Positions 22,505-64,000 are shown, counted from the stretch's first letter. The stretch is 64,000 bases of DNA from Podarcis gaigeae (GCA_964106915.2 OZ066926.1); one strand, 5' to 3'. The notes: a model not told the origin generated them from the letters alone. A program made the numbers and translations.

Positions 22505-22856
22505 CGGGTGGCGCTGTGGGTTAAACCACAGAGCCTAGGACTTGCCAATCAGAAGGTCGGCGGTTCAAATCCCAGCAACGGGATGAGTTGCTCGGTCCCT
22601 GCTCCTGCCAACCTAGCAGTTCAAAAGCACGCCAAAGTGCAAGTAGATAAATAGGTACACTCCGGTGGGAAGGTAAACAGCATTTCTGTGCGCTGCTCTG
22701 GTTTGCCTGAAGCGGCTTAGTCATGCTGGCCACATGACCCGGAAGCTGTATGCCGGCTTCCTCGGCCAATAAAGCGAGATGAGCGCTGCAACCCCAGAGT
22801 CGGTCACAACTGGACCTAATGGTCAGGGGTCCCCTTTACCCCTTTACCCTTTACCT
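22505..22856 (+). mobile_element. Sauria-type SINE
   Basis: Full-length copy of the same family. Confidence 0.9.
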
Positions 22857-25147
22857 GTCTCACACAGGTAAAAAAATTATGGCATTTCAATGCATAGCTG
22901 TCAATTTTTCCCTTTTCTTGCAAGGAATCCTCTTCGAAATAAGGGAATTTCCCTTTAAAAAGGGGAAATGTTGACAGCTATGTTTCAATGCACAAACACA
23001 CATCTTTAAGCATGTTTTGCATAAGTGCAAACATGGCAGACAGCACTCATATGATTGGCTCTGGTTCTCTATGGTATACACCCATATTTGGCTTAACAAT
23101 CATGGACCACCCATTTGGGGCAAGGTTGAGTAAATATTAAAAATGCTTGTTTTATGGTGTTATAACTTATTTCACGTTTATAGTTGTATATAAATGTTTC
23201 AGATGTGTTTATGGGGATGGGAGGAAGAATAACATATTTGTTCCTTTGCTCAAGGTGGTTGGTGGAAGGGGTTGAGAAACCTCTCACTAAACAAGGATGT
23301 AGCTGAGAATTTTCCAGAAGCTTCCTACCAATCCAAATAGAGCTGGCCGGCCTATCATTAGGCAGAGTGAGATGGCCACCTCAGAAAGCTGGTTTTGCTT
23401 GTCATCAAAGGGCAGCAAACATCAAGTGCTCAAAAGGCAAACATTTAAATTTTTTTACAGAAAAGAGGTCTGCCAAGTACAATCTCAGAGGCGTAGAGGG
23501 TGGTAGCTGAATGTATCTGAAACAATAAAAAAAAGTTTCATGGGCCTTTCACTCAGAGCAGCACCATAGAAACTCTTACATGAATGATATTTTGAGGAAT
23601 TGGCAAGAGTTAGGCTCTTGGCTGTTGGGTTCTGAAACCCAAGAGAGCTGGCTGTGAGCCTAAGTGGACCAAGGAGTCCAGGAGTTAAGTTGTGAAACAG
23701 CAAACAAAGACCAGAGGAACCAGAAGATGCTGCTTCAAAAGTTAGGAGTAAAAATCCCTGTTTAGGGCACTGCGATTTTGTGTGAGAGTGTGATCTCGCA
23801 TGTTTTGCCCCAAAACGTGTGTTTTTGAGCTCCGTGATATTGCGCAGGTCACGTGACTTGCTTGGGAGCACGGCTGGGAAGATGAACATCCCAGCTTCTG
23901 GCAACAACATGTAAATTAAAATTAAAGCAGTATCATACCACTTTAAACAGTCGTGGCTTCCCTCAAAGAATCCTGGGAACTGTAGTTTGTTAAAGGTACA
24001 GAAAGTTTTTAGGACACCCTTATTCCCCTCACAATTTTTAGTGTGGTTTAACAATTATTCCCTCTTTGGGGACTTCTGGGAATTTTAGCTCTGTGAGGGG
24101 AATAAGGGTCCCCTAACAACACTCAACACTCTACAATTTCCATGATTCTTTGGGGAGGGGGAGCCATGACTCTTTAAAGTGGTTTGATAACTGCTTTAAA
24201 TGTATAGTACAGATGGGGTCCAAGTCAACAATCAAAAATAGGTAGCCAGTGTGTATTCACACCAGGAATAAGTTGCTCAGAGTGAGACATTAACTCTGAG
24301 GCCTCACTCATCAGAGCACAGTCGGCCTCATGGAACACATTGTGAAATAAGCAAAGTAAATACACATTACTACACAACAATAAGACCCATGATAAAAGAC
24401 CCATAGGTCTAGAGTCTATGGCTACCTACACATTAGTAGCTCAAAATGAAGCAAGACTGGTTTCCCCATACTGTGTTTCAAGTCACATTTTCATATTGCG
24501 GGAATGCCTTCACCTGATGTTCATTACCTGTTTGGTTCCCTCACACCTGCAACCCCCCTCAACTCCTATTCACGAAGCTGCCATCTGCATATGCGCAATG
24601 GCTGTCTCAAATAACATACATGCCTCAGTTTAACTGCTAAGTGAATACGGCTTACGTTGTTGAATTGGATGGAAGCCGGTTTGAGGGGGAAACGCATCAA
24701 ATAGCATTTCTCAATAAGCTGCAGGATATGTCTGGGCTGTGTCAAATGCCCTATGTACACACAGAGCCGTCTTTCCCATAGGGCTTAGTGGTGCGTCGTG
24801 CCAGGGCGCCGGTTTCTCAGGGACGCCCCAATGAGTGGGGGAGCTGCACGGCTTTGCTGGCAGCCTCCCTTTTCTCTGCATGCCCACCAGCTGCGCCTCA
24901 CTAACCATATGGTTGGCAGGGCGCAGCTTCCCTCCCAAGCCTCTGTGGGGATTGCTCTCCCGCAGCGGGATGGGGGAGAGTTGCACACCCCCAATGGCTG
25001 GCAGTGCGCAGCTTCGCCCCCCCCCCCACTATCCATGGTAATTTGGGGCCACTGGGCGGATATTTGCACCCCGGCACTGCATCTGCTAAAGACGGCCCTG
25101 TGTACACAGCTTTAAACACCAGGTGTGGGGGTGCGCCTGAGTCAGTG

Positions 25148-25366
25148 TACAGTGGTACCTCGGGTTACAGACGCTTCAGGTTACAGACTCCGTTAACCCA
25201 GAAATAGTACCTCGGGTTAAGAACTTTGCTTCAGAATGAGAACGGAAATTGTGCGGCGGCGGCAGGAGACCCCATTAGTTAAAGTGGTACCTCAGGTTAA
25301 GAACAGTTTCAGGTTTAGAACGGACCTCCGGAACGAATTAAGTTCTTAACCCGAGGTACCACTGTA
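25148..25366. mobile_element. Tc1/mariner MITE
   Basis: TACAGTGGTACCTCGGGTTA...TAACCCGAGGTACCACTGTA. Confidence 0.88.
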
Positions 25367-26179
25367 ATGGGAACGTAGAATCCGAGTAAAACCTGAGACC
25401 CTTCATCTCTCAATCTCAAGGTCATGGGTTCCAGCTCCACATTGGGCAAAATATTCCTGCATTGCAGGGGTTGGACCACCTGACTCTCGTGGTTCCTTTC
25501 AACTCTACAATTCTATGATCTTGTGTCTCAGGGAGAAATATATTGACTAATTTTAAGATTTATTTAACTTAATTTCTGGTTGGCAGCTAAAATAGTGTGG
25601 ATTAGATACTGAGCAAGTTCTGCTGTCCATTGGGATGAAGAACGGTGGATCTGACATCCTCAACTGTTTTCCTGAATGTGCTTGTGTGTGCTTTAACAGA
25701 CAGTGTCACAGGGCTCCCCCAGCTGTGCTTGTGGCTACTCCCTAGTTCTCTGTGGTAACGAGACAGACATGGCCCTAGCATGAGTGTATAGGCTACTCCT
25801 GTGTCCTTGTTGCACATTGGCCTTGTCACCAACGCAGTTACCTGATTGGGAGGCTGTAATGAACTTTGCTGTGAATCTCGTCCTATACTTTTGCTGACAA
25901 AAAAATATGAACTGTCATCTCTGGTCATCAGTAGATTGGGCTGGAGGGAGCCACAAACTGCCCCCTCTTTGCATAAAAAGTGATTTGATCTTCCATGATT
26001 CAGTAGCCAGCAGTTATGTGTGGTTGAGCCCTATCTTTACTTCTCAGTCATTCACCTTAACCTGAAGCCTTCATTCCACCAGCCAAAAAACAGCACACAC
26101 TGTAGTTCAGGGACTTTTAGACTGTTGAACTCTTGCCTCAAAATTCCTTCTGAATTAGTAAGTAAGTAGTAAGTAAATT

Positions 26180-38665: not shown

Positions 38666-41600
38666 GCAATGAAAAGCTTAGTGGAAGAGCTCCCTGGCAT
38701 CTTGATTGAAAAAAAAACCAAACCTCATAGCAGGTGATGGAGAAGAGACCTGTCACCTGAGACCCCAGAGAGCCTCTCTGCTAAGTCACAGGTGACAATA
38801 CTGGGCTACAGTGACAAGTATTCTGGCCACAGTGCATAACAGTTTCCTATGTCCCAAACCATCTCCACATTTTAATTACACCAAAGGGCAGAAATTAAAG
38901 CAACCAAGCTATTGCTCTGTTTCAATTACCAAGCGTTTTGGCTCATTTCAAAAACTCGGCTCCATGTTTTGATGCAGCTAATGCGGAAGAAGCCACTGCC
39001 TTGGCAATTTTACTGTGCAATCCTATACAACAGGATTGGGGCAACTGTGGCAGGGGCGTCATGAGGACGTCAAGCGACTGATAGGCGTGTGGTCTCCCCC
39101 ACCTGACCTATGAGGTGAAGGGAAGGGTCTGCTTCACCTGTGCATTCCCTGCGGAGAATATGCTGGAGAAAACAGCAGGATAGAACCATGCCCCTTGCCT
39201 ATCAGCTGACATCACCCAGGTGGGAGGAAATGGCCTCATTGGCCAGTGGCCTGGAGGTTCCCCACACCCGCTAAACGTGTCTGCTCAACCTCACTGAATT
39301 CGAATAGGGCTCCCTAAATTTATTTATAAGCATTTCTAAACTGCTTAATATTTAAAAATCTCTAGGCAGTATGCAAATACAAAACATTAAAAAAAACAGT
39401 ATCCAAAAAAGAAATATGCAACATAAAAAGCTGTAAAACTGTAGTATTATAAGAACAGGAATTTGGTCATAGGAAGATCCAATCCGATGGGTCAGAGAAA
39501 GCCTGAGCAAAAAAGGCACATCTTCTTTACAAGACACCTGAAGCAGATGACAGGTGATGCCTCACAAGTGGCAGAGGGAAGGATATTCCCCAGTGCAGGG
39601 GCAATGGTTGAAAAAGCTCATTTTCAGGTCGCTGCCCTGTGATCTTTCATAAGGTGAATGTAGAATTACAGACTTAGAATCTGAAGGCCTGGATCCTGGG
39701 CATTATCAGGGCCTCATCCTGTATGAACCTATCCAAAGTATTAAGTTCAGCTGACAAAATGCTGCCGATGGGTCCAAATTATCCAGAAACTAAACCAGTT
39801 TACCCACAAGGCAGAAGTTTTTTGGTGACTGCTTCAAAACGCCCTTCCACAGGCTAAATGTTTTACTCCTTCCTCCCTCCTGGCATTCCAGAAGTAAATA
39901 AAAGCTTTGGGGACTTTGCTGTGCTTTGGGGACTTAGCACAAAATACATACTCCCATTGTTTGATTGTTTTATTATAGGAGCTTTCAGCCCAAACACTGA
40001 GGTCCAGCTCCGAGGGCCTTCTGGTGGTTCCCTCACTGTGAGACGTGAAGTTAAAGGAAAACAGGCAGATGGCCTTCTTGGTGGTGGCATCTGCTCTGCG
40101 GAATGCCATCCCGTCAGATGTCAAGGAAATAAATACTATACAACTTTTAGAAGACATCTGAAGGCAGCCCCTTATAAGAAAGTTTTTAATGTTTAATGTT
40201 TTATTATGTTTTTATATTCGCTGGAAGCCACACAGAGTAGCTTGGGCAACCTGTTCAGATAGGCAGGGTACAAATAATAAAATTGTTGTTGTTGTTTTAA
40301 GTAGTTTTATACTATTTATATCTTTTTTAAAATGTTTGCGAGGCTGATTGTACACGATTTTGAGAGCCTTAGCTGTAAAACAAATATGTCATCTTTAAAC
40401 AGATATATTATCTTATGCAAACTGCTGAGGTTTTTCTTATCAAGTGCTATATAAATCTTTTTGTATAAATAAACAAAATAACCATTAGCCACAGCAATAA
40501 CAACATTGTAAAGGCAGCCCATGCCCCAAGGACAAAACATGCCCATCACACCTGCCCCCCATCCGTTGCTAGCACCCCACCGCCATTTCCTTCCCATCTC
40601 CGCCATAGTTATGGGCCTATCTCAGCAGGTCAGCCCTCACAAAGAAACTTGTCCCATCCGCAAGCCACAAGATTGTCCTTGGGGGTGGCGTATGGGATGA
40701 GAAAGGGGGTGGGGGACGAAAACCATCTCACCTCCTCTTCTGCTCTCTCTGCCTCTTGCTGCTTCGACAGGAACTCCTCTGCCAGGGCCACGGCCCGTGC
40801 GCAAGTGTCCGGGCTGCATTCCCACACGCGGCTCCGAATCCCCGGAGGGAGGACCGCCAGGAACTGCTCCAGGATCAGGACGTCCAGAATCTGCTCCTTG
40901 GTGCGGTTCTTCGGCTTCAGCCAGTGGTTGCAAAGCTCCCAGAGCTGACCGCAAGCCTTCCGCGGCCCCTCCGTCTCTTGGTAGCAGAACTGCCGGAAAC
41001 GCCGGCGGGCTGTCTCTAGGGTGAAGCCACCCACTCCTGAGGTGGACGTCCGCGTCTTCCCGATGCTCCCTCGGTCTGCGTTGCCTGGGGTACTGGGCTG
41101 GGTTTCTTGCTGGCTCTCCTCTGCGTATGGAGCTGTCCATGGGGAGGAGGCAGGGTTCTCTGCTGGCTCTAATGCTGTTGTAGAGAAGGCCCCTGACTCA
41201 ATGTTTATGGGTGCTGCCTCAGTCGCTGGAGAAGCATCTTGCGTTGGTGGCGGTGGCGGCGGCGGCGGCGGCTGCACAGTTGCAGGAGGCGGAGCTCGTG
41301 GGGCCTGAGACACCTCCTCCCACTGGACTTCCCAGCGCTGAGGCTGTGGGGCTTCTTCTAGGGCCTCTGGCTCAGCAGCAAGTGGCACTTCCAAGCCCAG
41401 AAGTTCCTCCACAGTCCCAGTGCACACCACAAGTAGGGAGTCATCTCCTTCCTCTGCTCCCACAGCCTCTCGTACAGGCCCCGTTGGATNNNNNNNNNNN
41501 NNNNNNNNNNNNNNNNNNNNNNNNNNNNNNNNNNNNNNNNNNNNNNNNNNNNNNNNNNNNNNNNNNNNNNNNNNNNNNNNNNNNNNNNNNNNNNNNNNNN

Positions 41601-41778
41601 NNNNNNNNNNNNNNNNNNNNNNNNNNNNNNNNNCTTCCACCACGACTTCCGCCTCCGCTTCCGGCTCCTCCTCCTCTTCTTCCTCCTCCTCTTCGATCGT
41701 GATTTCCGGATAGACCCCCTGCTCAAGCAGCACTTTAAAATGGAGATCCAGCTCTCCCGATCCCTGCTCAGGCTCCAT
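32020..41778 (-). CDS. SCAN + degenerate KRAB + C2H2 zinc-finger protein (gene Z1), about 850 aa, 11 intact fingers
   Basis: Phase-compatible exons 41778-40732 (Glu/Pro-rich, spans the N gap, SCAN ETARRRFRQFCYQETEGPRKACGQLWELCNHWLKP...ILEQFL), 35730-35604 (127 nt KRAB-A-like LFEEVVVNF...LLG), 34031-33978 ([11 protein letters not shown]), 33344-32020 (finger array). Start codon choice (41778 vs 41862) is uncertain. Confidence 0.88.
33522..33750. mobile_element. Tc1/mariner MITE, second subfamily
   Basis: Ends CCAAGGTACGACTGTA; related to 36045-36259 and 62110-62333. Confidence 0.7.
34290..34535 (-). mobile_element. tRNA-derived SINE (Squam3-like)
   Basis: Minus strand begins GAGAGCCAGTGTGGTGTAGTGGTTAAGAGCGGTAGACTCGTAATCTGGTGAACCGGGTTCGC (A and B boxes). 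Confidence 0.75.
35438..35574. mobile_element. palindromic MITE (CCCTCCAGATGTTTT...ACTACAACTCCCATGATCCC family)
   Basis: Fold-back structure; related copies at about 5485-5595, 7080-7215, 43395-43530 and 52867-52995. Confidence 0.75.
36045..36259. mobile_element. Tc1/mariner MITE, second subfamily
   Basis: TACAGTCGTACCTT...AAGGTACGACTGTA. Confidence 0.8.
36494..36546. repeat. compound (AAT)n(GAT)n microsatellite
   Basis: Direct reading. Confidence 0.95.
39975..40285 (+). mobile_element. L2 LINE 3' end fragment
   Basis: GGCCTTCTTGGTGGTGGCATCTGCTCTGCGGAATGCC...TTTAGAAGACATCTGAAGGCAGCCC...GGGTACAAATAATAAA. Confidence 0.65.
41490..41633. other. assembly gap (144 N) inside the Z1 SCAN exon
   Basis: Run of N. 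Confidence 1.
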
Positions 41779-54673: not shown

Positions 54674-56127
54674 ACTGGATGACCCTTGGAACCCTTTCCA
54701 ATTCTATGTTTCTATGATTTTTACAGAGTTGCTATAAGAAAGCCAGTATGGTTAGTGTTGGATTAGGACCTGGGAGACCCAGGTTCAGATCCAGATGCAG
54801 CCAAAAAGCTTACAGGGTGACCTTGTGCCAGTCACACTCATTCTCTCTCCTCTATTCCCCTTTATAATAATAAATTTTATTTATACCCCGCCCTCCCCAG
54901 CTAAGACTGGGCTCAGGGCGGCTAACACCAGATATAAAAACAATTGATTAAAATACAACTTAAAAACAAGATTAAAATACAACATTAAGATGCAGCCTCA
55001 TTTCAGTAGAAACGCAAATCAAAAACTTTTTGGGGAAGAAAACATCCCCAAGCTACAATTAAAAAGGTAAAGGTAAAGGTACCCCTGCCCGTACGGGCCA
55101 GTCTTGACAGACTCTGGGGTTGTGCGCCCATCTCACTCAAGAGGCTAGGGGCCAGCGCTGTCCGGAGACACTTCCGGGTCACGTGGCCAGCGTGACAAAG
55201 CTGCATCTGAGAGCTACAATTCCCTGCGAAGAGGGATTGACTATTAAACCACTCTGGGAATTGAGAGTATTGCGAAGGGAATAGAATAGGTTTCCCAACA
55301 CCTCTTAGCACCCTGAATAAACTGCCCTTCCCATAATTATTTATGGGAAGGCATGCCCATTTAAAAAGGAATCACTGCGCTTGAGATGTAGGTTGTGAAT
55401 GTGGGAGGAAAAAAACAAGAATTAATTGACTTGGCCAGTCATTGTCTTTGATGCTACCTGCTATTGGGCTCCCTACTTTCTGCCTTGCCGGTCCAAATGG
55501 GCACCAGCTGTTCCTTACGTTAAACATTTATTTTCTTTTTATTCATTAGTGCATTTACACCCCACTCAGGGTTGGCTGGCTGCAAATACTTGGCTGTATC
55601 GTTTAGAGCCTTCCTCCTGCCAGCTTCAGGCCTTCAGTCTTCTTTTCTCTCCGGCAGCTGGTAGCTGTGGAGCGGCGTCCGGATTCTCTCCCCTCCCTGC
55701 ACTGGCCAGAAATGAAGAGTATGGAGAGAGGCCTGTGGGAGCTGAGGGGCTCCCAGCACACCTGGGCGCCGCCAGCAGGGACAGCGCGTACCTGTGTTCC
55801 CAGTGCGGGAAAGGGTTTCGTTGGCCGTCGGCGCTGGCCGTCCACCAGAGGACCCACACGGGGGAGAAGCGGCACCGCTGCGCCGAGTGCGGGAAGCGCT
55901 TTGGCCAGCGCGGCCATTTGACGGTACACCGGAGGATCCACTCGGGAGAGAAGCCGTACGAGTGTCCTCAGTGCGGGAAGCAGTTTGTCGACTCCTCTCA
56001 CCTCACCAAGCACCAGAGGACACACTTGGGGGACAGGCCCCACCACTGCGCTGAGTGCGGGCGAAGGTGTGCCAATAAACGCTCACTCGTGCAGCACCAG
56101 CGAATTCACAGCAGGGAGAAGTCCTAG
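51700..56127 (+). CDS. extended-SCAN + degenerate KRAB + 4 C2H2 zinc-finger protein (gene Z2), about 495 aa
   Basis: Phase-compatible exons 51700-52500 (capsid-like [32 protein letters not shown]...[12 protein letters not shown], then [38 protein letters not shown]...LEQFL), 53775-53901 (127 nt, SFED...SSLG), 54340-54429, 55658-56127 (4 fingers); AATAAA at 56899-56904. Confidence 0.9.
54638..54672. repeat. (GT)n microsatellite
   Basis: Direct reading; absent from the paralogous segment near 61870. Confidence 0.95.
55062..55210 (-). mobile_element. Sauria-type SINE, 3' fragment
   Basis: AAAGGTAAAGGTAAAGGTACCCCTG is the reverse complement of the tail. Confidence 0.8.
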
Positions 56128-58455: not shown

Positions 58456-59064
58456 CCTTGCACTTCAACCTCTTCAGCACCGTCTGAGACCGAGGAGCCC
58501 TTTTATCACTGCCAGCCCTACACCCGGACCAGCCAGAAAATGGGAAACCCCATTAAATTAATCAATATGAAATGTTTAATTGGATGGTTTTTATTTTTTT
58601 ATTTTGGATATGACGTGGCAAGATTTGATATGTTATTAATTGAGATGTTATTAATGAAAAATTAATAAAAATTTATTTATGTATTTATTTTTAAAGAAGC
58701 CAATGAGAATCTTTGTGTCCTCTCCTGGTGAGCCTCCAGCCTGGGTCCTGGGCATTGCCGGCTCAAAGGAAGCCCTTCTCAAGAAGCAAAATGGTGTTTC
58801 CTGCCATCTTGGGCCCCTCCAGGCCTGCAGGCTCCCCTGCTATAGAGAGATTCTCCCGTGGAAGGGACACTCCCGGGAGCTGGTGGACTCTCCTTCCTTG
58901 GAAGGTTTTAAGTAGAGGATGGATGGCCGTTTGCCAGGGACCATTTGATAACGGGGATTGGACTAGATGACTCTGAGTGTCCTTCCCAACTCCATTATTT
59001 CCCCGCACCCCCACCCCCTTCAGCCTAAATAGTCTCCAGGAGAGTAGTGAGAGCTAAAAGCAGG

Positions 59065-59070
59065 TTTATT
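59065..59070 (-). terminator. polyadenylation signal of globin-like copy B
   Basis: AATAAA about 75 nt after the ancestral KYR stop. Confidence 0.7.
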
Positions 59071-59201
59071 GGGCGGGGGGGGCGAGGGCGAGGCTGCCAC
59101 GTCCAGGAGGCACTTCTGCGGAGGGTGCGGCTGCTTCTCTGGCCTAGCGGTACTTGGAGGTCAGCATGACGGGGCGGCTGTCGATGGAGACGCTGGCGCT
59201 C

Positions 59202-59720
59202 TTATCTAGGAGCCCGGACGTTGACCGCCATTACCACCTGGATGTCTGGGCTCGGCAGCTGCGGGAAAAGCGAAGGCGGGGAGCGTTAGACGGAGAGGAC
59301 GGAGCGGCGCGAAGGGGCGAAGGAGGGACCCACGTGACGGGAAGAGAGAAAGACTCACCCTGGAGTTGACCGGGTCCGCGAGCAGGTTTTGGGCGGGCAG
59401 GGGGCTCGGGATGCCGAGGGCGCGGGCGACGGCTTTAATGGTGAGGCGGCAGAGTTCATCGAAAATGGACTTCTCTGGGTTCGAACTGACGGGGAGCCCG
59501 CTTCGGGAGGAGAGGGAGAAGAAGGTCAGTTTGCAGGAAAAGAGAGTAAAGAGAGTAAAGAGGAGAAGGGTCGGGCCATGGCCTCGACATCGGGAGAGGG
59601 TCCCTGCCCGACGGGGCGGGCTTACCTGGGCACAGCCCGGGCGCCGATGTCTGCGGAACGGGACGGGATCTCGGCCCAAACGGGCTGCACGTGGCTCTGG
59701 TTGACTCCGCTCAGCGCCAT
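59202..59720 (-). CDS. alpha-globin-derived 3-exon gene, copy B; predicted 97-aa heme-histidine-less mini-globin (could be a pseudogene)
   Basis: Exons 59720-59626 (95 nt, MALSGVNQSHVQPVWAEIPSRSADIGARAVP, Trp at residue 15, phase-2 intron), 59500-59359 (GLPVSSNPEKSIFDELCRLTIKAVARALGIPSPLPAQNLLADPVNSR, phase-0 intron), 59258-59202 (LPSPDIQVVMAVNVRAPR*). The ancestral ending VMLTSKYR* survives 1 nt out of frame to 59144. Globin origin is near certain; expression is unproven. Confidence 0.75.
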
Positions 59721-59764
59721 CCTGCCAGCTCAACCTCTTGGTGCCGTCGGAGCAGGGGCAGCCC

Positions 59765-59771
59765 TTTTATC
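59765..59771 (-). promoter_or_regulatory. GATAAAA TATA-position element of globin-like copy B
   Basis: GGGCGGGCGGTGATAAAAGGGC about 45 nt upstream of the ATG; same element in copies A and C. Confidence 0.65.
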
Positions 59772-60769
59772 ACCGCCCGCCCTGTCTCCCGGGTGGCGTC
59801 TCCCTCGGCCTCTGCCAGGGCGTCCTTGCCTCCCCCGGCCTGGCAAAGATCCGGGACGGGGCGCACGAGCCCTGGCAAGCGAGCATCCTCCTCGCAATTC
59901 CCGCTGCCTGCTGTCAGGCGGACACCATCGAGCATCTTCGCTGGACGCTCCCTGGGCGATGGTGACTCGGTAGTCCTGACACACACCCCCACACACACCC
60001 CGCGAGGTCGGCCAGTCAGTCTTCTTCCCCCATGGCTGCGCACTGCAGAGGGGCACGAGGGGAGGGGAGGAATGGCGCCTCCCAGAAAGCCGTGTACGGA
60101 GGTTCTCTCTCAGGTCCTCGCCTGCGGAGATGGGGGTGCAAGCTAGGACCCAAATCGAAGCAAATGGGTCGCTCTAACCCCGAAGCTAAAAGAAGAGGAG
60201 CGTGTGTGACCTTGCAGGCCATTTCTCCCCTTGTCCACGAAAGGCTGAGCATGGAAGCCAGGCAAGAAGACACCTGCAGAAGAGTCTCTTGGGAGGGCAG
60301 CTGAGCTGTGGGGGTAATGGGGGGCTGGTGCTCTATGCAGGCTTGCCATACTGGTGGAGGGAAGGAGAAGGAGAAGGCATGAGCACTTTGGGGCATCACA
60401 ATTTTGCATGACCCCCCGCCCAAAAAAACCAGGATGTCCCAGACTGTTGAGGGGTATGTGCCAGCCACATACTGACCCTCTAGGTGAGTTTTGCAGACTA
60501 CCAATTGGGAGCCGCTGATCTACAGTATTCCAAGTGTTTTTGCACCACAGGTTTGTAGAATGTCATTCTGGTAGCCAGAGTCTTGTTTTGAAATGCATTT
60601 TCAAGTGACCCCCACCCAGCATGGAATGGGCCTTTTTCACAGCTTCAGAACACAGGGTTGGCCTTTTCATCCAGCTCTCCACTACCATCTCAAGGTCTCG
60701 ATCCAGGTTGGCCACTGCCAGTTCAGACCATGAATATATATGTGTGGGGTTAAGATGTGCATTTTTTAA

Positions 60770-60975
60770 ATCACAGAATGGTAGAGTTGGAAGGGATCCC
60801 GAGGCTCATCGAGCCCAACCCCCAGCAATGAAGGAATCTCAGCTGAAGTATCCCAGACAGATGGCCAGCCAACCTCTGCTTTAAAATCTCCAAGGAAGGC
60901 GAGTCCACCACCTTCAGAGGGAGTCTGTCCCACCGTGAAACAGCTCTTGCTCTCAGAAAGTTATTCCAAGTGTTC
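60770..60975 (-). mobile_element. CR1 LINE 3' end fragment
   Basis: Minus-strand ORF NFLRARAVSRWDRLPLKVVDSPSLEILKQRL and tail TTCCAACTCTACCATTCTGTGATT. Confidence 0.8.
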
Positions 60976-61423
60976 ACAGCGCCCCCCCCAAGACAGCATT
61001 GCATGCGGCCTCAGCAACCTGAGCGCCCTGCTGGAGGAGGAGATGACCTTCTGAGGGAGTCTCTCTCCCTCCCCGTAGGGGGGCTCTGGAGGGGGCCTCC
61101 CTCCTTTCTTCCTTTGCACCCGCTCAATCCTCCCAGCCTAAAGTTCCCCACCTCTGCTTCTCCTGCAGGTGCTGGGTAATATCATCATGGTGATGGCCAC
61201 CTCAGAACCCAATTCCTAGGGACCGAGGTCCATTTGGGGTCCCCAATAAAGTACTGGAGGAGGCTGGGCCTTCCTTGTTCTCTTCAGCCAGTTTTGGCCA
61301 AACCACAGTGTGTTTCTTTTCTGATGCAGTTACAGATAGGTAGCCGTGTTGGTCTGCCATAGTCAAAACAAAATAAAAAAATTCCTTCCAGTAGCACCTT
61401 AAAGACCAACTAAGTTGTTCTAG

Positions 61424-61461
61424 GTATGAGCTTTCGTGTGCATGCACACTTCTTCAGATAC
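61424..61461 (-). ncRNA. minimal hammerhead ribozyme motif (inverted copy)
   Basis: Exact reverse complement of the 61469-61506 motif. Confidence 0.65.
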
Positions 61462-61468
61462 ACAGTGT

Positions 61469-61506
61469 GTATCTGAAGAAGTGTGCATGCACACGAAAGC
61501 TCATAC
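61469..61506 (+). ncRNA. minimal hammerhead ribozyme motif (Penelope-associated)
   Basis: GTAT CTGAAGA A GTGTG CATG CACAC GAAA GC TC ATAC: stem I, CUGANGA core, stem II, GAAA, palindromic AGCU helix III, CUC cleavage triplet. Confidence 0.65.
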
Positions 61507-62109
61507 CTAGAACAACTAGCTCATACCTAGAACAACTTAGTTGGTCTTTAAGGTGCTACTGGAAGGAATTTTTTGTTTTGTTTTTTTCTGATGCAGTTTC
61601 TTCTGACACAGAGGGGACATGGGACTCCCTGGCAGACGTGGGAAGCGAGACCCTTCTGCGGGGGCAGGTGGGCAGGGTACTAGACTGCTCTGATATACCA
61701 GAGACATCGAAATCCTTACAGGGGAAGCTGACACCCTCAGAATTATGCAGCACAAAGGTTTTACTTTTGTCATGAACTTGCTAGGCAGTCTCAGGCAAGC
61801 CACTCTCCATTTCAGCTCCTTTCTCCCATGTTCAACATGAGCAAAATAATGTTCGCATTCCTGCATTGTGAGGGTTGGACTGGATGCTCTTATTCAGTTA
61901 GTTAGCCTCTTTTGTCCACCATTTTGTCTCTATTGCAGTGGTTCTATGAGGTAGCAAGATGGCTGCCATTGCTACCTCCTATTTCCATAATAATTAATTT
62001 TTGTACCTCTTTGAACTGAATGGGTTGTTCCAGCTACTCTTGGTGACTTACTAAAGAATTACTGGGCGGATGCCATGACTGTTCAAGTGTTATAATAGTG
62101 TTTTGAATG

Positions 62110-62333
62110 TACAGCCGTACCTTGGTTTTCAAACAGCTTATTCCTTGAACGTTTTCGCTCCCAAACGTTGCAAATCTGGCAATGACTGTTCCGGTTTGCA
62201 AACTATTTTTGGAAGCTGAACGTCAGACGGGGCTTCCTGAAGCCAATTGGAAGCTGTGCTTTGGCTTCCAAAGGTTTTGGAAGTCAAACGGATTCTGGAA
62301 TGGATTCCATTCGACTTCCAAGATACAACTGTG
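62110..62333. mobile_element. Tc1/mariner MITE, second subfamily
   Basis: TACAGCCGTACCTTGG...CCAAGATACAACTGTG. Confidence 0.7.
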
Positions 62334-62972
62334 CAGAGCCGGTGTGGTGAAGTTGGTGTTATGTGGTTTTAAGACATTTGGAAATAATAGAGAAAATTCA
62401 GGAACAAAAATATAAGACTATCTCCAGACCAGCCAGAAAATGGGAAGCCCCATTCAATCAATCAATATGAAATGTTTAATTGTATTGTTTTTATTTTTTG
62501 TTTTTATTTTGGATATGACATGGCAATATTTCATATGTTCTTAATTGAGATGTTATTAATGAAAAATTAATAAAAAATATTTATTTATTTATTTATATTA
62601 AAAGAGGCCAATGAGAATCCTTGTCTCCTCTCCTGATGAGCCTCCAGCCTGGGTCCTGGGCATTGCGGCTCAAAGGAAGCCCTTCTCAAGAAGCAAAATG
62701 GTGTTTTCTGCCATCCTGGGCCCCTCCAGGCCTGCAGGCTCCCCTGCTATAGAGAGATTCCCCCGTGGAAGGGACACTCCCGGGAGCTGGTGGACTCTCC
62801 TTCCTTAGAAGGTTTTAAGCAGAGGATGGGTGGCCGCCTGCCAGGGACGATTTGATTCCGGGGATTGGACTAGATGACTCTGAGTGTCCTTCCCAACTCC
62901 ATTATTTCCCCGCACCCCCCACCCCGTTCAGCCTAAATAGACTCCGGGAGAGCAGTGAGACCTTAAAGCAGG

Positions 62973-62978
62973 TTTATT
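62973..62978 (-). terminator. polyadenylation signal of globin-like copy C
   Basis: AATAAA at the homologous position. Confidence 0.7.
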
Positions 62979-63066
62979 GGGGGGGGGGGCGAGGGCGAGG
63001 CTGCCACGTCCAGGCGGCACTTCTGCGGAGGGCGCCGGCTGCTTCTTTCGCCTAGCGTTATATGGA

Positions 63067-63592
63067 TCACAGCCCATTGGCGATGCAAGCAGCCGAGCAG
63101 AAGATGCCCATTTCCAGCTGGATGTCTGGGAACGGCACCTGCAGGAGGGGCGAAGGCGGGGAGCGTTAGAGAGAACAGAGAGACGCGAAGGGGCGAAGGA
63201 GGGACCCACGTCTGGAGCCCCCGCCCGACGGGGAGGGAGAGAGACTCACCCCGGAGTTGACGGGGTCCGCGAGCAGAAGGTTCTGGGCGGGCAGGGTGGT
63301 CAGGTTGCTGGGATCCCAGGTGAAGCTGCAGATTATCTCGAAGAGGTACTTGGTCATGTCCTCCGCTAAGGGGCGGGTTCTACGGGAGGAGGGGGAGAAG
63401 AAGGTCAGCTTGCGGGAAAGGAGAGAGTAAAGAGGAGAAGGGTCGGGCCATGGCCTCGCCATCGGGAGAGGGTCCCTGCCCCACGGGGCGGGCTTACCTG
63501 GGCACAGCCTGGGCGCGGATGTCTGCGGAACGGGACGGGATCTCGGCCCAAACGGGCTGCACGTGGCTCTGGCTGACTCCGCTCAGCGCCAT
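63067..63592 (-). CDS. alpha-globin-derived 3-exon gene, copy C; predicted 98-aa heme-histidine-less mini-globin (could be a pseudogene)
   Basis: Exons 63592-63498 (95 nt, MALSGVSQSHVQPVWAEIPSRSADIRAQAVP), 63379-63250 (TRPLAEDMTKYLFEIICSFTWDPSNLTTLPAQNLLLADPVNSG), 63138-63067 (VPFPDIQLEMGIFCSAACIANGL*); all GT-AG with frame preserved. Confidence 0.75.
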
Positions 63593-63636
63593 CCTGCCAG
63601 CTCAACCTCTTGGTGCCGTCGGAGCAGGGGCAGCCC

Positions 63637-63643
63637 TTTTATC
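63637..63643 (-). promoter_or_regulatory. GATAAAA TATA-position element of globin-like copy C
   Basis: GGGCGGGCGATGATAAAAGGGC about 45 nt upstream of the ATG. Confidence 0.65.
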
Positions 63644-64000
63644 ATCGCCCGCCCTGTCTCCCGGGTGGCGTCTCCCTCGGCCTCTGCCAGCGCGTCCCTG
63701 CCTCCCCCGGCCTCGGCAAAGATCCGGGACGGGGCGCACGAGCCCTGGGAAGTGAGCATCCTCCTCGCAATTGCCGCTGCCTGCTGCCAGACGGACACCG
63801 TCGAGCATCTTCGCTGGACGCTCCCTGGGCGATGATGACTCGCTAGTCCAGACACGCCCCCCCCCCCCCCCAGGTCGGCCAGTCAGTCTTCTTCCCCCAT
63901 TGCTGTGCACGGCAGAGGGGCACGAGGGGAAGGGAGGAATGGGGCCTCCCAGAAAGCCGTGTGCGGAGGTTCTCTCTCAGGTCCTCGCCTGCGGGTGTGG

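Follow-up and report, generated by a model that had tools for sequence, protein, structure and literature searches.

Globins are a standard model of a gene family, in which duplicates normally retain the haem pocket and tandem vertebrate copies undergo concerted evolution by gene conversion; their intron positions and phases are canonical, and the canonical alpha-globin exon 2 measures 205 nt. In classical globin clusters, conversion tends to homogenise the coding sequence while introns and flanks diverge. This polarity is reversed in a family of small alpha-globin-like genes found at the end of a 64,000-nt stretch of Podarcis gaigeae DNA (GCA_964106915.2 OZ066926.1; the whole stretch is called the window below), where three copies, A, B and C, were read on the minus strand. 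The family resembles alpha-haemoglobin chains, its closest solved relatives being sauropsid alpha-A, in the 95-nt exon 1, in phase, in the position of intron 2 after a DPVN motif and in its TATA and AATAAA signals; however, those chains have ~141 residues as against 93-108 in the family, where the region of the proximal histidine is replaced and B and C lack a distal one, and the family, unlike classical alpha-globin, is tandemly amplified inside a SCAN zinc-finger cluster.

Snake three-finger toxin genes show a comparable pattern, described as 'accelerated segment switch in exons' (ASSET; PMC2474615, PMC2711939). ASSET toxins and the Podarcis family are both three-exon tandem squamate genes with similar introns, radically different exon segments and a conserved ordered exon framework; unlike the toxins, the family has no signal peptide and no toxin fold but a globin scaffold, and it shows whole-cassette exchange, demonstrated by incompatible trees, between segments that are still alignable. 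Genes of the major histocompatibility complex (MHC) have a variable peptide-binding exon and domains with separate histories (PMC3434948). They share with the family one diverse exon, neighbours homogenised by recombination, intron breakpoints, incongruent exon trees and some trans-species lineages, whereas in the family the diversity seen here lies among tandem paralogues rather than alleles, and the conserved parts of the gene do not cluster by species.

We read B and C, with a probability of about 0.6, as tandem haem-less mini-genes derived from alpha-globin, of ~93-108 codons, in which a conserved frame carries shuffled cassettes and one of these, the exon 2 block, has been diversified. 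To the frame belong the promoter and the 3' untranslated region (3'UTR), together with exon 1, the two introns and the final ~60 nt of exon 2. There are two variable cassettes: the block, which is formed by the first 70-90 nt of exon 2 and corresponds to the former E helix, and the coding sequence of exon 3. The gene models are as follows.

Copy B
59720-59065, minus: whole gene, with TATA-like box, three exons, GT-AG introns and AATAAA
59765..59770, minus: TATA-like box, conserved in the family alignment
59720-59626, minus: exon 1
59625-59501, minus: intron 1
59500-59359, minus: exon 2, 142 nt, in frame
59500-59417, minus: variable block of exon 2
59416-59359, minus: conserved exon 2 end
59358-59259, minus: intron 2
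from 59258, minus: exon 3, type I, stop at 59204-59202
ending at the ancestral stop 59146-59144, minus: relic of the alpha-globin C-terminus, out of frame, followed by the 3'UTR
59070-59065, minus: AATAAA

Copy C
63592-62973, minus: whole gene, with TATA-like box, three exons, GT-AG introns and AATAAA
63637..63642, minus: TATA-like box, conserved in the family alignment
63592-63498, minus: exon 1, donor dinucleotide intact
63497-63380, minus: intron 1, donor and acceptor dinucleotides intact
63379-63250, minus: exon 2, 130 nt, in frame
63379-63311, minus: variable block of exon 2
63310-63250, minus: conserved exon 2 end
63249-63139, minus: intron 2
from 63138, minus: exon 3, type II, stop at 63069-63067, ancestral stop at 63054-63052, followed by the 3'UTR
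62978-62973, minus: AATAAA

Copy A and tandem units
58455-58074, minus: copy A, a decayed member (exon 1 58455-58367, exon 2 58227-58074)
58601..60127, no strand assigned: tandem unit with B, aligning with 62506-63994 at 85.5% overall
62506..63994, no strand assigned: tandem unit with C; the window stops ~400 nt upstream of C

B and C are thus carried by tandem units of ~3.9 kb each, whose flanks beyond the gene differ by 5.8-6.4%. A search of the 64-kb window found only copies A, B and C, and no second match to the B or C block; further copies may lie past the window end, beyond C. Copy A has an exon 1 that is 6 nt shorter and lacks exon 3, and its exon 2 is more globin-like, yet with motifs spread over different frames; its P. 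lilfordi orthologue has lost exon 1.

The preliminary description of this DNA had compared B and C by hand, and its counts were all reproduced. In exon 1 there are 3 differences over 95 nt, each of them non-synonymous, and the alignment of intron 1 (118 nt) shows 7 substitutions and a single indel of 7 nt, whereas the first 61 nt of exon 2 hold 28 differences that change 15 of 20 residues, with identical codons at the five residues common to both copies; the contrast between exon 2 start (28/61) and intron 1 (7/118) was highly significant (Fisher p = 5.6e-10). Both exon 2 indels (15 and 3 nt) are in frame, the hydrophobic spacing is retained as claimed, and the block aligns to alpha residues ~52-77, in agreement with its assignment to the former E helix. 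The observation is real, and stronger than had been recognised: the divergent block stops within exon 2, the last ~58 nt of which differ by ~7%, and a second divergent block in exon 3 (B 59228-59155), 52% different, passes the present stop of B and reaches the ancestral stop; the exon 3 sequence on its 5' side and the 3'UTR differ by 8-17%. Misassembly, which had been named as a possible source of the pattern, is unlikely and was rejected, since a DNA contig from a public run, which may share its sample with the assembly, covers 59312-59579 with 0 differences and links the B block to both introns, and P. lilfordi and P. muralis, whose genomes were assembled independently, show the same gene architecture.

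A search with B exon 1 (31 residues) against 1.8 billion representatives returned four predicted proteins, and a second search brought the number to nine, all of them unnamed predictions from Podarcis lilfordi and Podarcis muralis. The family located so far amounts to 16 copies in three Podarcis genomes. Its loci adjoin SCAN zinc-finger genes and hold at least 5 copies in P. lilfordi and at least 8 in P. muralis, some in tandem and some inverted; a further P. lilfordi copy, on a different chromosome, has no introns. Both species match the unique flanks of the window collinearly, at 95-96% identity, so that the window represents a third, closely related genome. The tandem mini-gene family is so far known only from wall lizards (Podarcis), and it was not described in the papers searched on Podarcis globin and squamate alpha-globin pseudogenes; the look-up for one predicted protein, P0003, returned no gene on record.

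For protein comparisons, full-length P. muralis and P. lilfordi predictions were searched or folded, and B and C were used as exon pieces. Significant sequence similarity marks the family as putative haem-less alpha-globin derivatives: the intronless member (P0005) matched alpha chains of the PDB with an E value of 1.5e-8, a family profile (A2) matched only alpha chains (E = 2.6e-5), and B exon 1 alone aligned to the alpha chain in register, with weak E values (0.33-1.5), while neither the exon pieces nor the 8 full-length members searched reached the Pfam globin gathering score. Exon 1, of 95 nt, closes in phase 2; exon 2 has a length of 130, 139, 142 or 151 nt in 12 copies and, following the DPVN motif, closes in phase 0; the stretch matching alpha residues 40 to ~55 is absent from the family. 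At the position of the proximal histidine (F8), alignment to alpha residues 78-107 shows a shorter replacement lacking histidine, and for the distal histidine (E7), no histidine occurs anywhere in translated exon 2 of B or C. Some copies retain the alpha-globin C-terminal motif. In P0005 (98 aa; L002:9938-10640, P. lilfordi, OX395140.1) this motif is in frame, and the intronless copy therefore preserves an older state of exon 3; its locus also shows a tRNA-like short interspersed element within the 3'UTR and a short A run after AATAAA. Because the similarity of P0005 extends over the TATA region, its source transcript either started upstream of TATA or the copy had another origin.

The divergence profile was obtained from the 12 full copies of the three genomes (66 pairs), as mean pairwise difference by segment.

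Exon 1: 0.041
Intron 1: 0.051
Exon 2 block: 0.411
Exon 2 end: 0.089
Intron 2: 0.065
Exon 3 coding part: 0.264
3'UTR: 0.075

The block thus reaches 0.41 as against 0.05-0.065 in the introns over the 66 pairs. In 15-column windows the diversity is 0.03-0.05 up to the exon 2 boundary, rises to 0.41-0.47 with the first exon base and returns to 0.05 about 100 columns past the exon start, and the blocks are alignable at 45-78% identity.

Recombination was examined by approximately unbiased (AU) tests on segments, with groups named after the alignment had been seen. Exon-3 data rejected the exon-2 clades (AU p = 0.002 and 7e-8), and exon-2 data rejected the clade of exon-3 type I (AU p = 2e-6), so that the two exons have incompatible histories and gene conversion sparing the block, the alternative raised in the preliminary description, is at work. 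Exon 3 occurs as a long, frameshifted type I, with the alpha-globin C-terminal codons out of frame (B and two P. lilfordi copies), and as a type II that is 28 nt shorter and has sub-types (C and most other copies). B and one P. lilfordi copy are 0.043 apart in exon 3 and 0.49 apart in the exon 2 block, whereas three pairs with a common block (0-0.036 apart, equal to their flank divergence of 0.013-0.035) have unlike exon 3 sequences (0.155-0.345). Positional orthologues can also differ: Plil_10554m and PmurA_2169m, with flanks collinear at 94%, carry different exon 3 types and blocks 0.32 apart. Exchange reaches into the block itself, where a 23-nt identical element is common to otherwise unlike copies, and the first 31 nt of another pair of unlike blocks are alike at 90-94%.

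Copies therefore exchange cassettes, by gene conversion or by recombination, the breakpoints lying within the conserved frame, and as a result exon 2 and exon 3 assort independently while the frame stays ~95% alike. Because the exon 3 types are common to several species (pairs across species are 0.043-0.10 apart), the B-C contrast in exon 3 is an old difference within a similar frame, and not fast change since a recent duplication. Segment exchange explains this contrast and part of the intron similarity, which is consequently no clean clock for exon age.

In the exon 2 cassette the reading frame is kept and stays open. No stop was found in exon 2 of any of the 12 full copies from three species, and when neutral drift was simulated on the block's own tree, all copies were stop-free in 1.2% of the runs. 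All distinct gap intervals of exon 2 were multiples of three (5/5), as against 5/20 in the introns and 3'UTR (hypergeometric probability 0.005). Both GT donors, both AG acceptors and AATAAA are present in 12/12 copies, as is the TATA-like box, with variants in two P. lilfordi copies. The G+C content is 84% at codon position 3 (C 60%, T 5%), 51% at position 1 and 41% at position 2 (T 32%), compared with 65-70% in the introns; an irrelevant frame would lose such a contrast between codon positions. The amphipathic character of the helix is kept, with hydrophobic residues at helical spacing and a cysteine recurrent at one position. In the intronless P. lilfordi copy both introns are missing exactly at the predicted junctions and the copy ends soon after AATAAA; this precise removal indicates that the splice sites were used in the germ line at some time. 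Between copy A of the window and its P. lilfordi orthologue, exon 2 is no more diverged than the intron, so that exon 2 is not intrinsically hypermutable at this locus. The results support the conclusion that B and C are not freely decaying pseudogenes.

Selection on the block was evaluated with one-ratio codon models on fixed trees (IQ-TREE) and likelihood ratio tests (LRT) of omega, the ratio of non-synonymous to synonymous rates, against 1, for a set of six well-aligned copies and a set of eleven copies (25-36 codons). Omega was 2.7 (six copies, LRT p = 0.008) and 1.8 (eleven copies, p = 0.025) under GY+F1X4, and 3.1 and 2.1 under MGK+F1X4; for exon 3 type II it was 2.35 (p = 0.02). The summed Nei-Gojobori (NG86) ratio was 2.2 in the true frame, as against 0.62 and 0.95 in the shifted frames. 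Fourfold sites at codons whose first two bases agree differed by 0.11 in the block (9/82), compared with 0.064 in non-coding and 0.047 in conserved coding sequence. In further support of selection, all trans-species pairs of sampled exon 2 blocks are at least 0.29 apart, whereas exon 3 of the same genes includes pairs at 0.04-0.10. Diversification of the amino-acid sequence is thus probably favoured, with diversifying selection as the most likely, though unproven, driver. For P. muralis, RefSeq models with isoforms exist for family members, as predictions. In a small run guessed to be RNA, from another organism, a 522-nt contig covers exon 1 and 400 nt upstream (59626-60126); its match ends precisely where B has its exon 1 donor (59626), and the 27 letters beyond are unlike the conserved intron, as expected from a spliced molecule. 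Another contig of the same run contains intron 1 of C. As the contig at 59626-60126 extends 400 nt beyond the start codon on the upstream side, transcription may begin further upstream.

Several results weigh against an interpretation of B and C as maintained, selectively diversified genes. With F3X4 or empirical codon frequencies, omega in the two sets fell to 1.46 and 0.98 (MGK) and to 0.67 and 0.47 (GY), because with so few codons the strong bias at the third position leaves the estimate dependent on the model; in addition, the block alignment is uncertain and recombination inside the block violates the single-tree assumption. The conserved coding parts gave an omega of 0.67, not significantly different from 1, so that purifying selection is not clear there, and the variable sites of exon 1 are spread evenly over codon positions. 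Compared with the ancestral reading, exon 3 of B has a frameshift. The block divergences fall into two groups (0-0.036 and 0.22-0.56) and do not follow the divergence of the frame; in young pairs the block is not accelerated. The frame yields a star-like tree that needs 4 species-label changes, where shuffled labels need 4.7 on average, and homogenisation continuing after the species split is therefore not shown; given the same lack of species clustering, concerted evolution by species is not supported. The B-type block region also occurs in a contig from another organism, with ~95% identity along 260 nt, which implies that some cassettes persist unchanged across species. Among the runs found to hold the stretch, searched as contigs only, none is on record as RNA. 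The AlphaFold2 model of P0008, built with an 8-member alignment, was unreliable (predicted local distance difference test score, pLDDT, 53; predicted template modelling score, pTM, 0.22); its two helices, at residues 36-58 and 86-107, come from a model too poor to support a fold search.

The explanation that best withstands these data besides our own, although we regard it as unlikely, takes the copies as neutral relics, that is, unexpressed or non-coding pseudogenes in which old heterologous segments stop conversion tracts while the rest is homogenised. It is in keeping with the mosaic structure, the omega near 1 under F3X4, the value of 0.67 in the conserved coding parts, the frameshifted type I exon 3, the decay of copy A and of two partial copies, and the lack of an RNA run containing the genes among those found. 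Against it stand the stop-free exon 2 in 12/12 copies (P = 0.012 under drift), the in-frame indels (5/5 vs 5/20 in non-coding sequence), the splice sites, AATAAA and TATA-like boxes of the 12 copies, with TATA variants in two from P. lilfordi, and the codon-position-specific composition (T 32% at position 2, 5% at position 3). Copy A, moreover, displays what neutral decay looks like in this family, its exon 2 not being hypervariable between species, and the relic explanation does not account for what first caused a divergence that starts exactly at the first base of the exon. The preliminary description held that neutral pseudogenes should not diverge faster in an exon than in the neighbouring intron; openness and indel phase support a reading of the copies as other than freely decaying pseudogenes. 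If the genes were unexpressed, the locus would still show how conversion can leave sharply bounded old segments in a young-looking frame, a caution against intron-based dating of duplicates.

Recent diversifying selection acting alone, with a B-C duplication as young as the introns (5-6%) and point substitutions producing the 40-50% exon difference, appears quite unlikely. Synonymous divergence at the kept codons (0.11 vs 0.064) is near the intron level, all five residues shared by B and C use identical codons, omega exceeds 1 with F1X4, and in two positional orthologue pairs the block is 0.32-0.37 apart as against 0.05-0.08 in the frame, as this explanation would predict. The exon 3 types, however, are each 4-10% apart across species and so older than the species split; block divergence is bimodal and bears no relation to frame divergence; young pairs are not accelerated; and the third-position difference (0.25-0.38) and the model dependence of omega count against it as well. 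The diversifying selection proposed in the preliminary description is favoured by omega with F1X4 (1.8-3.1) but not with F3X4 or empirical frequencies (0.5-1.5) and is not established; its two explanations both apply, exchange being shown and positive selection suggested. Local hypermutation or repeated replacement by unrelated sequence in the absence of protein selection, which would resemble the segment switch suggested for exons of snake toxins, is highly improbable: sharp block boundaries, bimodal divergence and B and C blocks with no close relative among 16 sampled copies would fit it, but blocks alignable at 45-78% with a common hydrophobic pattern and a recurrent cysteine are homologous, not unrelated, sequence, frame and openness are preserved, and the pseudogene copy A shows no such process.

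If B and C are indeed mini-genes with a conserved frame and shuffled cassettes, diversifying selection on a binding surface would push the amino-acid sequence of the block to differ, while exchange of whole and partial cassettes would spread and recombine the variants; the conserved introns would supply the homology for this exchange and hence give no measure of cassette age. A wider scenario, which we put forward tentatively, is that the loss of haem binding was followed by amplification and by conversion of the former E helix into a hypervariable recognition surface, with introns as recombination handles and combinatorial diversity on a globin scaffold. A pocket-less, lineage-restricted globin family with independently assorting hypervariable cassettes would, if true, represent a new globin fate, and combinatorial recognition on such a scaffold would be of a kind otherwise seen in toxins, immune genes and reproductive recognition genes. 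The locus offers a compact natural system (three exons, ~600 bp, many copies, several species) for separating selection from conversion, the same question that is posed by MHC exon 2 and toxin segment switching.

Other features were recorded at the family loci and elsewhere in the window. P0004 (L003:10001-16034, P. lilfordi) is a 145-residue model that joins exons 1-2 of a C-like copy to exon 2 of an A-like copy ~5 kb downstream; probably the gene model is chimeric or reflects transcriptional read-through. Within the P. lilfordi mini-globin array there is a transposase gene of the pogo/Tc5 type (CENP-B_N, HTH_Tnp_Tc5, DDE_1; L001:6048-7145). The downstream flank of the array occurs twice in P. 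muralis (L004-L007 vs L006, 94-96.5% identity), matching P. lilfordi merged coordinates 22592-25784, which suggests that the array end was duplicated together with its SCAN zinc-finger flank in a larger segmental event. In the window, positions 55713-56127 on the plus strand hold an open reading frame with several C2H2 zinc fingers, 96% identical to the area beside the SCAN zinc-finger genes of P. lilfordi and P. muralis. At 41490-41633 the sequence consists of 144 N, representing an assembly gap or masked sequence. An inverted pair of a very abundant interspersed repeat at 61330-61570 forms a long hairpin, and in each of the four runs its summed contig depth exceeded that of the adjoining DNA by a factor of thousands.

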